This document shows, in pieces, positions 4,450-14,571 of a stretch of DNA of 40,578 nt. The number at the start of each line of letters is the position of its first letter. Position 1 is the first letter of the stretch. Origin of the DNA: Macrostomum lignano (taxonomy: Eukaryota); the NCBI GenBank assembly GCA_002269645.1, contig NIVC01004611.1, forward strand, positions 1-40,578, read 5' to 3'. The translations under genes were made by a program, and so were the position numbers. The notes below the pieces were generated by a model that saw only the letters and a program-made list of their open reading frames with translations, ran no database searches and was not told the origin of the DNA.

Positions 4450-5242
4450 GCTATCGAACATGTTCTTAATAACAACAAAATCGAACTAAGGGAAGAAATC
4501 TGGATTAAAAAACTAGGGACTTACAAACCGCCAGGCACGAACATCAGGGTCGACAATCATCTTCTCCGACCCATCCCAATGGTCCTTCCTTTTCACCATC
4601 TACGGTCTGGCTTGCCAACGAGATTGCTAAAAACTTTGATAAGCTACAAAATAAACCAGGCTCCCGCATACTGCCCGCTTTTACACGGCAACGTAACTTA
4701 CAGAGCCTCCTGGCTCCCAATAAGTTCAAGTCTCAGCCAGGAAACATTTAATCATTTTAACCAATGCGCTATTTTTACCCTATTAAAGTACTCGTACAAT
4801 ATTTATTCACGTGTCATTTATTTTATTTTATTCAAACTGCTTAATTGTACGCTCAGTATTGATTTTTATGCTCCTACCCCCAATACCGGCATTTCATCTA
4901 ATCGTATAGTATCGCATATCGCATAGTACTTCGAAATAACAATTTTTTTATTACAAATATACTGTCGTTTAAAATGAATGGTGGAAAGCCTCTGGGACAA
5001 GTTAGAGCTAGGCAAAACAGGGTTTTAAATGTACATCCCTCATATGTACAACTACTCATCAATTCTATCAGACTAAGAAAAATAATACTTAAAAGACCAA
5101 CTTGCATTGCATGACACACAGATTTTTTGGCCTGACGAAGAGCCCAGAGGCTCGAAACCGGTAGCCCATATTAAATTAATTAAGTCTTTTGATTTTTTTA
5201 AACACGCCGTGACCTCTCTTCTCTCTCTCTCTACCTCTCTCC
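4450..5242 (+). repeat. 5' pseudo-LTR of PLE copy 1
   Basis: Starts mid-EN ORF (GCTATCGAACA, equal to 9393) and matches 9393-10185 apart from a few substitutions and 1-bp indels. Ends in GTGACCTCTCTTCTCTCTCTCTCTACCTCTCTCC. Confidence 0.9.
5129..5166 (+). ncRNA. Minimal type I hammerhead ribozyme (copy 1, 5' pLTR)
   Basis: GGC-CUGACGA-A-GAGCC(CAGA)GGCUC-GAAAC-CG-GUA/GCC. It has the CUGANGA core, a 5-bp stem II, GAAA, a rudimentary stem III containing the palindrome ACCGGU, a GUA cleavage triplet (cut after 5163) and a 3-bp stem I. Such motifs are established features of PLE pLTRs. Confidence 0.85.
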
Positions 5243-5282
5243 TGCCTATGCCTAGCTTGCTCTAGTGCCCGTGCATCATACT

Positions 5283-7469
5283 ATGGAGAATCCCTCCAGG
5301 AGATGGAGAGGTCGCACGTTCTACAACAGTAACTACCAAAAACAGAACAGGAGACAACCTAGAAAGAACGAACACCTGGATGACGCCTCCAAACAAGCCA
5401 GACTGCTTTTGGACAAACTCCTGAGATGCTACCACCATCGGGCAGTCATCGAATCTATTATTGTCGAGCCACAACGGGCCTATGGCTCTCTTCAACAAGC
5501 CGCACGATCACTGGACCAGGCCTTTCGCCCTGCATTCGCGTCCGACAAACTCCTACAAGACCTACAGGCAGCGAATGTTGCCCACATCGAGAGCTCACTA
5601 CTGAAGATCCTGACACACTACGATGCGGCAACCGAAGAGTCTGAAAATCTACTGCGACAACTCTGTAACGACAAAGGACCACCAGATCTAGCCTCAGTGG
5701 CGCGACAAGTCATCCACCATGTGGGCCTCCGCTGCAAACTTGATGCCTCGACCGTCTCAAAATTTCTGGATCGGTTGAATTCTCTGTCTAATGACCCCTC
5801 TGTTATTGACTTACTCGCTACGCCTGCCGCTGCTGCACCGACCATGACCTCGGTGGAGGAATCTCAACCACGCCAGGAGGGCACGGACTTCTGGAACCTA
5901 GATGACGAGTCAACTGTCAGCCTGAACAATTTCTTTCTGCAAAAGAACCAAGCGGATCGACTGGAGTCATTCCTGGCCAAGGAAGTCGCTCCCCTAGCCT
6001 GTCGGCATTCTTCAGCGTCAGAACGACCGGAACCACGACTGATTGCTTGGTTCGGCCCTGACTACAGCTACTCGGGTCGACAACTACGATCAAACGGGCC
6101 GATCCCCTCAGGGCTCCAACCTCTACTCGAGTCCGTTGAAACTGCGACAGGAAAGCGCTTCAACTCGGTCCTCGTCAACGTGTACCAGAACGGCTCCCAA
6201 TTCGTCGGCTGGCATGCCGATGACGAAGCCGTGCTTGGCGAACGACCCTTCATCGCTTCAGTGTCAATCGGGTGCACCAGAACCTTCGAGCTAAAAGCTA
6301 AGTCAGCGACTTCGCCTTGTCTATCTCTCGATCTATTTCATGGCAGTCTTCTGACCATGTCAGGCGACTGTCAGGCCAACTTTTTTCATCGAATTCCCCC
6401 GCAACACCACAAACGTGGCCGCCGATTCAACTTGACCTTCCGCTGGACTCACGAAGATCCCAACACCGGTGCCACCGGGGCTTCCCTGGCCCCATCTGCA
6501 CCCAGTGCCACCAAGACAGCCACTCCCAACACCGCAGTCCCTCTGACTGCAAGCATGGCACCAGTCGATCTCGACGAGAGCGCCCAATCTGCCGAACATC
6601 GTAGGATCCCAGAGGACGTCTGCTCCAACAACGACACCACGACAGCCAGCACGATCGCAGCATCTAGCAATGAGCCCACGGCAAGCACGAACACGGAGAC
6701 CAACGCCGACTCGGTAGTGGACGGCGGCGCGACGACCATCGGGGACGTGGCAGCGAGCGCCGATGCGACGATCAGCAACGACCCCTCAGCGGCTGCGGGT
6801 GCGGCTTCGGACGGCAGTCCGGCGGCAGGCGGGACCACCGAAGTCGCCTCACCTGAGAACGGCTGTACGTCGGCAGCTGACGACCTCTTTGTGACCCCGC
6901 CTCTTCCACGGGTGGGACTGCCTGCTTCACCTGCCAAACGCCGCTTACCATCGCCGGACTCTGAAGACTCCCCTGGTGGTCCGGAACGCCACAGGCCGCA
7001 TCTGAATGACTCACCCAGCACCTTTGAGCAACCTGTTTCGCTCATCATCAGCAGGGACTGCCGGAACCTGGTACTCTGCCCAAAGCCTTTCGAGGGCCTC
7101 AAACTGCCGGCAATCACAGAGGTACATGAGTACTCACTGTCAGCCTTACCATCTCTACTGAGGTCGGCTGCCCTGCGGAACCGGCAATGCGCTCAGTCAA
7201 CGGTGCTGGTCCTGCCGGACGAGCTGCTCAGCACAGACCACTGGCGAGAGTTGCTCTCTGAGGCTATCGATCTACTCAGAGCGGACAGTCTGACACGTAA
7301 GATCCTTCTGGTTCCGTCCTTTGCCAGCGGTGAAGAATTGACTCAATCTCTGAGTAAGAAACTCTCACCTGTTACTCTTATTGCCTCTCCTCCTCTTAAA
7401 CCAATTGTATCCTTCTCAGCGCCGGACTTTATACTGGCGCTGGCTTCCTGGCTGAGAACTTTAAACTAG
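5283..7469 (+). CDS. PLE ORF1 (728 aa from ATG 5283): basic/helical N-terminus, AlkB-family 2OG-Fe(II) dioxygenase, A/T/S-rich linker, possible degenerate SGNH-like C-terminal domain
   Basis: Uninterrupted ORF. ALKBH2/3-like motifs: PRLIAWFG..YSYSG, FNSVLVNVYQNG, VGWHADDE (HxD, 6213-6221), IASVSIG, HGSLLTM, FFHRIP (distal His, 6387), RFNLTFR (R-x5-R, 6423/6441). Confidence 0.88.
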   Translation: MENPSRRWRGRTFYNSNYQKQNRRQPRKNEHLDDASKQARLLLDKLLRCYHHRAVIESIIVEPQRAYGSLQQAARSLDQAFRPAFASDKLLQDLQAANVAHIESSLLKILTHYDAATEESENLLRQLCNDKGPPDLASVARQVIHHVGLRCKLDASTVSKFLDRLNSLSNDPSVIDLLATPAAAAPTMTSVEESQPRQEGTDFWNLDDESTVSLNNFFLQKNQADRLESFLAKEVAPLACRHSSASERPEPRLIAWFGPDYSYSGRQLRSNGPIPSGLQPLLESVETATGKRFNSVLVNVYQNGSQFVGWHADDEAVLGERPFIASVSIGCTRTFELKAKSATSPCLSLDLFHGSLLTMSGDCQANFFHRIPPQHHKRGRRFNLTFRWTHEDPNTGATGASLAPSAPSATKTATPNTAVPLTASMAPVDLDESAQSAEHRRIPEDVCSNNDTTTASTIAASSNEPTASTNTETNADSVVDGGATTIGDVAASADATISNDPSAAAGAASDGSPAAGGTTEVASPENGCTSAADDLFVTPPLPRVGLPASPAKRRLPSPDSEDSPGGPERHRPHLNDSPSTFEQPVSLIISRDCRNLVLCPKPFEGLKLPAITEVHEYSLSALPSLLRSAALRNRQCAQSTVLVLPDELLSTDHWRELLSEAIDLLRADSLTRKILLVPSFASGEELTQSLSKKLSPVTLIASPPLKPIVSFSAPDFILALASWLRTLN
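7460..7466 (+). promoter_or_regulatory. Candidate -1 ribosomal frameshift slippery site U_UUA_AAC
   Basis: ORF1 ends ACT TTA AAC TAG, so the heptamer is in the correct X_XXY_YYZ phase. The -1 frame is open from 7400 and runs into the RT. The site is identical in copy 2 (11457-11463). Confidence 0.72.
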
Positions 7470-14099: not shown

Positions 14100-14166
14100 C
14101 ATATTAAATTAATTAAGTCTTTGATTTTTTTAAACACGCCGTGACCTCTCTTCTCTCTCTCTCTAC

Positions 14167-14300
14167 CTCTCTCTCTCTCTCTCTCTCTCTCTCTCTCTCT
14201 CTCTCTCTCTCTCTCTCTCTCTCTCTCTCTCTCTCTCTCTCTCTCTCTCTCTCTCTCTCTCTCTCTCTCTCTCTCTCTCTCTCTCTCTCTCTCTCTCTCT
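14167..14300 (+). repeat. (CT)67 tail at the 3' end of PLE copy 2
   Basis: Pure CT run between the element terminus (..CTACCTCTCTC) and the right copy of the 66-bp duplication. Confidence 0.95.
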
Positions 14301-14571
14301 CCAACTCTGCTTTGCTCAAAGCCGCCGCAGTTGCTACTGCAACCAGGGGAGAGAAACAGAATAAAAAAGGGAGCAGCCGCCATCCTTCATCCAATCTGCA
14401 GAGCATCAGTTCTCTTCTTCTCGTATCTTCTGCTTTTTCTGCTTCTTTCTCCTCGGAGCGTGTCTGCCCCCCGGGGGTGAAACGGGGAACTCTTCCTCCG
14501 TTTTATCTGGCCCATATTCGCGCAGGACGGGTGATGGGCTGCGACAAGCGCATGAATGGAGGATGCCCTAC

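Follow-up and report, generated by a model that had tools for sequence, protein, structure and literature searches.

A Penelope-like element of Macrostomum lignano with an AlkB-type dioxygenase domain in ORF1, a conserved candidate frameshift heptamer and predicted hammerhead ribozymes

The window analyzed here is the 40,578-nucleotide contig NIVC01004611.1 of the Macrostomum lignano assembly GCA_002269645.1. It contains a Penelope-like element (PLE) in which the first open reading frame (ORF1) carries an AlkB-type dioxygenase domain. That the element is a PLE and that the AlkB domain belongs to it can be regarded as practically certain. What is new is a clade of PLEs, comprising at least six lineages, whose ORF1 has an apparently ALKBH3-like dioxygenase and which lies within a wider group of PLEs with two ORFs, a UUUAAAC frameshift signal and a modular ORF1. 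The M. lignano family is best explained as a recently active PLE. The explanation of the locus taken as a whole, that of an AlkB-bearing, frameshifting, hammerhead-containing and (CT)n-targeting PLE, is on balance probable.

The element was compared with related elements on other contigs. Group I consists of the window element and the elements of contigs L001, L003, L004 and L005, Group II of those of L006, L007, L008 and L012, and the element of L013 falls outside both. The ORF1 of L013 is cut by the start of its contig and the N-terminal helical domain was not seen there. The full-length M. lignano element, copy B of the locus, and its coding features are as follows.

5243-10185, + strand: copy B, full-length element of 4,943 bp (repeat analysis, alignment)
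5283-7469, + strand: ORF1, 728 amino acids (ATG at 5283, stop codon at 7467-7469)
5394-5777, + strand: N-terminal helical domain of ORF1, LDxxLRxxHH...FxPAF...CKL, common to the nine lineages of Groups I and II
5922-6443, + strand: AlkB / 2-oxoglutarate (2OG)-Fe(II) dioxygenase domain of ORF1, apparently ALKBH3-like (Pfam, solved-structure comparison)
6960-7466, + strand: C-terminal domain of ORF1, fold unassigned, at the position of an SGNH esterase in related elements
7460-7466, + strand: slippery heptamer U_UUA_AAC, in the ORF1 phase and directly before the stop codon TAG (7467-7469)
7460-9695, + strand: ORF2, -1 frame, with a DKG motif, reverse transcriptase (RT) at about 8240-8746, linker at 9093-9119 and GIY-YIG with CCHH at 9210-9464

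The first-pass annotation of this DNA had assigned an AlkB domain to ORF1, and the assignment was borne out. Residues 214-387 matched the Pfam family 2OG-FeII_Oxy_2 (PF13532) with E=1.7e-28 and 100.6 bits, the cut-off being 31.2, and the catalytic ligands are intact. The Fe ligands H311-x-D313 and H369 and the 2-oxoglutarate site R381-x-N-x-T-F-R387 are invariant in the five elements aligned. When the domain was compared with solved structures, human ALKBH3 was the closest (1e-30), followed by ALKBH2 (1e-16), ALKBH5 (7e-5) and E. coli AlkB (3e-4). The domain thus appears to be ALKBH3-like, a designation by nearest relative and not by rooted phylogeny. The best matches in a representative library of 1.8 billion proteins were AlkB proteins of about 200 residues with 45-51% identity.

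The AlkB domain sits between two older modules of ORF1. The helical domain on the amino side matched no known family, and a profile search with it returned nothing. A protein search with the whole of ORF1 gave two matches only, as it was swamped by low-complexity words. In the M. lignano C-terminal domain the SGNH motifs GDS, G, GxN and DxxH are absent. The possibility was considered that this region is a decayed SGNH esterase, and it found no support, as alignment by hhalign to the esterase profile of the related elements gave a probability of 0.5%. The AlphaFold single-sequence model of the domain was poor, with a predicted local distance difference test (pLDDT) score of 51.

The identity of the element as a PLE comes from ORF2. 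For the searches, the ORF2 protein was repaired at two positions with the bases of copy C, a second copy at the same locus. The repaired -1 frame runs open through 765 codons, and in its translation the DKG motif, the RT motifs (YIDD among them), a C-x4-C-x-x-C linker and a GIY-YIG domain with CCHH are present. Pfam identified RVT_1 (E=8e-6) and GIY-YIG (E=6e-5, above the Pfam cut-off). The linker reads C-GSSR-C-KC-C at 9093-9119 and is followed by CNQC...H...H in the GIY-YIG region. RT and GIY-YIG therefore share one reading frame once it is repaired, as in PLEs, and the 2,358 homologues found at E<=1e-10 have PLE-type domain sets. The region spanning the RT and the endonuclease (EN) gave no informative match among solved structures. 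A CX2-5CxxC linker preceding GIY-YIG together with an internal CCHH is how the Neptune and Nematis elements are defined in PMC8557442, and both are present. The element is accordingly classed as a PLE of the type that has GIY-YIG at the C-terminus and a linker resembling a Zn finger, and by these motifs it would be Neptune/Nematis-like.

The slippery heptamer had been proposed to lead into an RT/GIY-YIG ORF that lacks an ATG, and the comparison of lineages confirmed both the phase of the heptamer and the frame of ORF2. U_UUA_AAC is in phase at the end of ORF1 in 10 of 10 lineages, in each of which ORF2 lies in the -1 frame relative to ORF1; the ORF2 proteins are 36-49% identical. This is the arrangement of a frameshift site, X_XXY_YYZ in the zero frame with the downstream ORF in -1. 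The leucine codon of the heptamer is UUA and the asparagine codon AAC in all ten. The codon before it varies (ACU, UUU, UAU, AAU, AGU, UCU, CAU, CAU, AGU, CAU) and always ends in U. A stop codon follows the heptamer directly in half of the lineages (5/10). The -1 frame of the window element is open from 7400, and its first methionine is 73 codons into that frame; in L004 the open -1 frame begins at the heptamer itself. None of the five AlkB elements of Group I has an ATG before the conserved NLHP...GLxFIP motif. Moreover, the gene models of several more distant PLEs start with ...FKL..., the residues that the heptamer encodes in the -1 frame, so the arrangement reaches beyond these clades.

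Frameshifting by -1 at UUUAAAC is, on this comparison, strongly favored, and ORF2 would most likely be made as an ORF1-ORF2 fusion. A fusion of AlkB, RT and EN of about 1470 residues had been anticipated in the first-pass annotation; 1,471 residues are indeed predicted after the slip, but only once the two deleted bases are restored. The same annotation had likened the strategy to that of RNA viruses. For expression this was the wrong comparison, as an ORF1 extended by -1 frameshifting into a fusion follows the gag-pol logic of retroviruses and long terminal repeat (LTR) elements. A PLE ORF1 separable by a frameshift with a pseudoknot has been drawn before, in the legend to Fig. 1 of Craig et al. 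2021 (PMC8557442).

The closest ORF2 proteins, 46-49% identical to that of M. lignano, are those of the other four Group I contigs, L001, L003, L004 and L005, three of them found in Logan assemblies and one in an NCBI assembly. Upstream of the RT, all four have an ORF1 with the helical domain, AlkB (36-46% identical) and the C-terminal domain. In L012, from a Joint Genome Institute (JGI) metagenome, the whole unit is tandemly repeated, and ORF1 combines the helical domain and AlkB with an SGNH esterase that is intact. Over the five AlkB lineages other than M. lignano, L012 among them, ORF2 identity was put at 41-46%. L006, L007 and L008, which are 38-41% identical, have the helical domain and the esterase without AlkB. 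The SGNH/GDSL esterase with GDS, G, GxN and DxxH at the end of ORF1 is seen in L006:370-2184, L007:8908-10515, L008:714-2168 and L012:6873-9524 and also in L013, and its profile weakly matched the ORF1 esterase of the long interspersed nuclear element (LINE) ZfL2-1 (PDB 4c1b, E=0.048). L013 (GCA_044232415.1, JAZHCE014292299.1, 1-1821) is more distant. Its ORF1 has a NADAR domain (Pfam E=1e-13) in the place of AlkB, followed by the SGNH esterase and then by an in-phase U_UUA_AAC UAA.

In a neighbor-joining tree of ORF2, the five AlkB elements of Group I were grouped with 100% bootstrap support. The esterase elements, L012 included, formed the sister group with 100% support, and L012, with both AlkB and esterase, branched first within it (72%). 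AlkB thus occurs in both branches of the basal split, which leaves an ancestral origin with a single loss or two separate gains. Judged by its motifs, the C-terminal domain of the M. lignano group appears to have lost every SGNH motif.

AlkB was also seen in proteins of the representative library that appear to come from retroelements of another kind. In P0170 (757 residues) and P0259 (843 residues), which are 31% identical end to end, AlkB is fused to a gag-like region with three CCHC knuckles that has the look of a LINE-type ORF1. In a neighbor-joining tree, the AlkB domains of P0170, P0259 and P0175 intermingle with those of the PLE ORF1 proteins, and P0170 is 50% identical to L003. These proteins hint at possible sharing of modules between classes of retroelements.

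Positions 4450-14366 of the window had been taken for one mobile unit. This view could not be maintained. Repeat analysis and the alignment of copy B with copy C showed that the interval is a composite of 2.9 copies of one PLE family, all on the + strand, in which copies A, B and C each end in a hammerhead motif and a CT-rich tail. Microsatellites were located with Tandem Repeats Finder (TRF). In addition to copy B, the locus contains the following.

4371-4449, no strand: (CT)39 microsatellite (TRF), 5' flank and target of the A-B insertion
4450-5242, + strand: copy A, 793-bp 3' fragment beginning within the GIY-YIG region and serving copy B as its upstream pseudo-LTR
5129-5166 (core 5132-5163), + strand: predicted hammerhead 1, near the end of copy A
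5213-5242, + strand: CT-rich 3' tail of copy A, which runs directly into the 5' end of copy B at ...ctctacctctctcc/tgcctatgcc
10072-10109 (core 10075-10106), + strand: predicted hammerhead 2, 3' region of copy B
10156-10185, + strand: CT-rich 3' tail of copy B
10186-10249, no strand: 64-bp copy of the right flank, identical to 14303-14366
10250-14145, + strand: copy C, 5'-truncated, 3.9 kb (alignment to B)
14062-14099 (core 14065-14096), + strand: predicted hammerhead 3, 3' region of copy C
14142 onward, + strand: CT-rich tail of copy C, continuous with (CT)78
14146-14301, no strand: (CT)78 microsatellite (TRF)
14303-14366, no strand: original 64-bp right flank

Copy A is 100% identical to 9393-10185, the end of copy B. 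The pseudo-LTRs of PLEs have this arrangement, in which a copy truncated at its 5' end lies in tandem with a complete one. Copy C begins with 8 nt of filler, after which homology to copy B starts at 10258, inside the AlkB domain; the two copies diverge by about 1%, with several 1-nt deletions in C. The unique 64-bp flank and part of the (CT)n are present on both sides of copy C. This duplication is read as a probable long target-site duplication, unusually long for a retrotransposon insertion. In the simplest history, copy C would have been inserted with a long target duplication consisting of (CT)x and 64 bp, after which the A-B partial tandem would have entered the left copy of the microsatellite.

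The M. lignano assembly contains at least five copies of the ORF1 gene. Three further loci, L009, L010 and L011, were examined and were 98-99.8% identical to the window element. L010 has the A-B-C structure and a left flank identical to that of the window and is therefore a duplicate or haplotig of the same locus. L009 and L011 are independent insertions. In L009, a truncated copy of 1.5 kb is joined to a full one; its 5' flank has (CT)28, and its 3' junction shows a few CT units. L011 joins a truncated copy of 1.05 kb to a full one and is flanked on the 3' side by a long, imperfect repeat rich in CT. The junction between truncated and full copies given above for A and B is identical at all four loci; the truncated parts measure 0.8, 1.05 and 1.5 kb.

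An intact ORF2 had been implied for the copy first read. As assembled, copy B is not coding-competent, since two short homopolymers in its ORF2 have each lost 1 nt, after 8428 and after 8879, which breaks the frame; copy C has both bases. Frame-breaking indels were found at 11 further sites in copy C and at one in L009, near 12520, and different ones are present in the copies of L010. Among these 98-99.8% identical copies, nearly all of the frame-breaking differences are 1-base indels in short homopolymers, and they differ between the duplicate loci. This signature fits private mutations as much as uncorrected errors of long-read assembly. Because the copies are not alike in their 1-nt indels, the consensus of the family has intact coding capacity.

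ORF1 is 99% identical to the GenBank hypothetical proteins BOX15_Mlig007645g1-g4. In GenBank and UniProt, the ORF1 copies are entered as four host genes under the name 'Fe2OG dioxygenase domain-containing protein' and ORF2 is unannotated, probably because it has no ATG and contains 1-nt indels. The four 'Fe2OG dioxygenase' genes of the M. lignano annotation are transposon ORF1s and not host genes.

The hammerhead motifs were located by pattern and then checked by hand. Three occurrences of the core CTGACGA-N-helix II-GAAACCGGTA were counted in the window, against an expectation of 0 from 100 shuffles. In hammerhead 1, helix I is GGC/GCC, the core is CUGACGA, helix II is GAGCC/GGCUC and is followed by GAAA, and helix III is the palindrome ACCGGU; cleavage is predicted after A5163. 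Rfam reported no hammerhead in the window, either at the gathering cut-off or at E<=10, because helix III is a mere 6-nt palindrome. Furthermore, homologous motifs were found upstream of ORF1 in L003, L004, L005 and L012. Across these and the window, five lineages in all, the core is kept while helices I and II covary, and helix III is palindromic in each of the four relatives (ACGU, ACGCGU, ACGCGU and ACUAGU).

The pseudo-LTRs of metazoan PLEs are known to contain minimal type I hammerheads that have been proposed to work as dimers (Cervera and de la Pena 2014, PMC4209133). The window element shares with them the type I topology, the extra nucleotide between A9 and G10.1, the G10.1-C11.1 pair, a 4-6-nt palindromic helix III (positions 15.2-16.2), the occurrence in both flanking repeats and covariation between families. 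There is no notable difference, and the window motif would be an ordinary member of the minimal dimer-forming PLE type that the Rfam covariance models miss; self-cleavage is predicted from this likeness. The features described at first, a hammerhead, a pyrimidine tract and ORF1, then a second hammerhead and a CT-rich terminus at a (CT)n site, were all found on the + strand, and they greatly exceed chance expectation.

The claim of a CT-rich 3' end at (CT)n was also upheld, as a CT-rich tail follows each hammerhead and (CT)39 and (CT)78 lie at the flanks. A CT-rich microsatellite is present at the 3' junction, the 5' flank or both in four separate events (A-B, C, L009 and L011), and CT-rich tracts occur in L003 and L012 as well. 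With four events in agreement, a preference for (CT)n is likely. A bias of Neptune PLEs toward microsatellites has been ascribed to the CX2-5CxxC linker (PMC8557442). In L005:1-200 (GCA_029980145.1), the tract beside the hammerhead segment is of the CCCTAA type, the reverse complement of a telomeric repeat, and not CT-rich. This suggests a different target within the AlkB clade, possibly the telomeric repeat.

From these features, a cycle of the element can be proposed. Tandem read-through transcripts would be trimmed by the paired hammerheads. Most ribosomes would terminate after ORF1, and a minority would slip by -1 at UUUAAAC to produce the ORF1-RT-EN fusion. The nuclease would nick (CT)n/(GA)n DNA, and the GA strand may then prime reverse transcription on the CU-rich tail of the RNA. 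AlkB, held close to the element's own RNA and first-strand cDNA, would clear lesions of the m1A/m3C type that block reverse transcription or cause it to miscode.

It was considered whether the AlkB frame is a host gene or an assembly chimera beside a PLE. GenBank annotates the copies as ordinary host genes and the long-read assembly has many 1-nt indels, both of which could be taken in favor of this. However, the unit of ORF1, heptamer and ORF2 is present with identical element boundaries at three independent M. lignano loci. Five other lineages, assembled independently from short reads or metagenomes, have the unit too, two of them as whole-unit tandems. In addition, the truncation of copy C lies inside AlkB, which fits an AlkB region that is reverse transcribed with the rest of the RNA. 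The first-pass annotation had allowed that other members of the family might lack the AlkB ORF or its junction with ORF2; when such members were sought, both were present in five further lineages and at no fewer than three further M. lignano loci. A host gene, chimera or misassembly is ruled out by this recurrence, and the probability left to it is negligible. Another question is whether ORF2 could be translated by reinitiation after termination, by internal initiation or from a spliced transcript, UUUAAAC being kept for a C-terminal Leu-Asn or as an RNA signal. The lack of a visible stimulatory structure after the heptamer would fit such a scheme, and a stop codon directly after the heptamer, as in five lineages, resembles termination-coupled systems. 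Some Group II gene models (P0009, P0011 and P0012) have an ATG in the -1 frame four codons before the heptamer, and PLEs retain introns (PMC4209133). These mechanisms are nevertheless improbable. The conservation is at the level of nucleotides, with one of six leucine codons always used and a final U always kept in an otherwise varied preceding codon. The five AlkB elements offer no ATG before NLHP...GLxFIP, the first methionine of the window element lies 73 codons in, and the L004 frame starts precisely at the heptamer. A frameshift with a pseudoknot has, moreover, already been drawn for PLE ORF1 (PMC8557442, Fig. 1).

The role of AlkB admits two main readings. ALKBH3 strips 1-methyladenine (m1A) and 3-methylcytosine (m3C) from single-stranded DNA and RNA. 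These methyl groups lie on the Watson-Crick face and stall reverse transcriptases or make them miscode. As both ORF1 and the ORF1-RT fusion contain the domain, AlkB would be delivered in cis. The most economical role, judged from the nearest solved relative, would be the cleaning of m1A and m3C from the element's own RNA template or first-strand cDNA, although its chance is put at slightly less than even. The main rival is an epitranscriptomic counter-defense, in which AlkB would erase a host mark (N6-methyladenine (m6A) or m1A) that destabilizes or silences the element RNA, and would not be repairing chemical damage; such a role has been suggested for the AlkB ORF of orchid Ty3/Gypsy elements. 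An AlkB protein encoded by an orchid Gypsy element demethylates m6A in vitro (PMC9289625), AlkB is found in several types of retroelement ORF1, and a relative, L013, has NADAR, enzymes of which act on ADP-ribose/NAD conjugates, in the place of AlkB. Some NADAR members take ADP-ribose off guanine bases. Taken together, these cases have the appearance of responses to marking by the host. However, the domain of the window element resembles ALKBH3 far more than ALKBH5, whereas the orchid domain nests in the ALKBH5 clade (PMC9289625), and counter-defense is regarded as unlikely. A broader and rather doubtful idea is that the ORF1 of this PLE superfamily is a modular carrier of mark-stripping enzymes, with AlkB in six lineages and NADAR in another, mounted on an older scaffold of helical domain and esterase. 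If so, a pool of 'de-modification' modules would be common to several classes of invertebrate retrotransposons, and host marking of, or damage to, retrotransposon RNA or cDNA would be strong enough to select for erasers encoded by the elements themselves.

Several observations weigh against the proposed explanation of the locus. Folding of the 121 nt that follow the heptamer was no more stable than that of shuffled sequences (minimum free energy z=0.0), and no consensus structure was seen there among five lineages, pseudoknots not having been searched. Local hairpins lie 10-16 nt after the heptamer in four of the five Group I elements, the usual spacing being 5-9, and are neither homologous nor in register. 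The hammerheads of PLEs show weak cleavage in vitro, and there is debate about what they do (PMC4209133; PMC8557442). Furthermore, the DNA copies of the element end 80 nt past the hammerhead cleavage site, and an RNA cut at the 3' hammerhead therefore cannot template integration. The 3' (CT)n could in part be made by the element. The substrate proposed for AlkB is deduced from a single guide, the nearest solved relative. Lastly, ORF2 in the window is broken, and if the indels are real and not assembly errors, the copies are dead.

All structural features except AlkB are standard or already recorded for PLEs. The first-pass annotation had put forward a four-way combination of AlkB, frameshifting, hammerheads and (CT)n targeting. 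All of these features are present, but hammerheads, partial tandems and a microsatellite bias are standard for PLEs, and AlkB is the one new ingredient. Full-text literature searches found no report of AlkB or another dioxygenase as a PLE-encoded domain, although prior cataloguing in Repbase or Dfam is possible. As described in Arkhipova 2006 and Craig et al. 2021 (PMC8557442), the canonical EN+ PLEs Neptune and Nematis share with the window element the partial-tandem pseudo-LTRs, 5' truncation, pseudo-LTR hammerheads and microsatellite bias, and an optional ORF1, set apart by a frameshift, appears in Fig. 1 of PMC8557442. In the abstract of that paper, canonical EN+ PLEs are said to have a single ORF, whereas the window element has a conserved AlkB-containing ORF1 of 728 residues, reaching 1,078 in its relatives. 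The targets named in PMC8557442 are (TA)n, (CA)n and (C)n, and that of the window element is (CT)n. EN+ PLEs are called single-gene in abstracts and reviews; the window clade departs from this with a large conserved ORF1, a nucleotide-perfect frameshift signal and an embedded repair or demethylation enzyme.

Other retroelements and viruses provide partial parallels. The only retrotransposon AlkB met in the literature searches is the ALKBH5-like m6A demethylase ORF of a Phalaenopsis orchid Ty3/Gypsy element (PMC9289625). Like the window element, it is a retrotransposon with a fixed 2OG-Fe(II) domain of the AlkB family and intact cofactor ligands. The orchid element is a plant LTR element in which the domain, of the ALKBH5 clade, forms a separate extra ORF and has been shown to be an m6A demethylase in vitro. 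The window element, in contrast, is an animal PLE known from sequence, in which an apparently ALKBH3-like AlkB lies inside ORF1, upstream of the frameshift site. NADAR domains occur in the Pol of an Ectocarpus Gypsy element and in the ORF1 of an oyster Tx1 LINE (PMC12477816). These resemble the window element in having captured enzymes for modified nucleic acids, but the enzyme family and the element classes are different. No report of NADAR in PLEs was found, including in PMC12477816. The esterase elements L006-L008, L012 and L013 are like the CR1/L2/RTEX LINEs with an esterase ORF1 (ZfL2-1 ORF1p, PDB 4c1b) and like the Athena PLEs and rotifer LTR elements with GDSL ORFs (PMC5408684). The esterase had been reported for the endonuclease-negative Athena PLEs, and not for the clade of the window element (PMC5408684).

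Some plant RNA viruses are a functional parallel. They carry AlkB in their own polyprotein, where it is thought to clear methyl lesions from RNA. AlkB domains in the replicases of Flexiviridae and Closteroviridae are said to have been described by van den Born et al. in 2008. The likeness to the window element is functional only, as these viruses use RNA-dependent RNA polymerases and their AlkB is not in a gag-like upstream ORF. As 1-methyladenine and 3-methylcytosine block reverse transcriptases, an ALKBH3-like domain carried by the element suggests that the quality of the template, or its marking by the host, may limit retrotransposition in animals. M. lignano is tractable for transgenesis, and the idea that template quality is limiting is thus testable in vivo.

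The surroundings of the element are highly repetitive and rich in satellites. Minisatellite and microsatellite arrays prevail in the rest of the contig (3461-4085, 14617-16907, 17418-18360, 19501-24683, 26113-27314 and 35885-36054), and the satellite units around the element include a 20-mer, a 23-mer in about 99 copies, a 39-mer, a 17-mer, another 20-mer, an 11-mer, (CTAT)160 and (GTCT)42.

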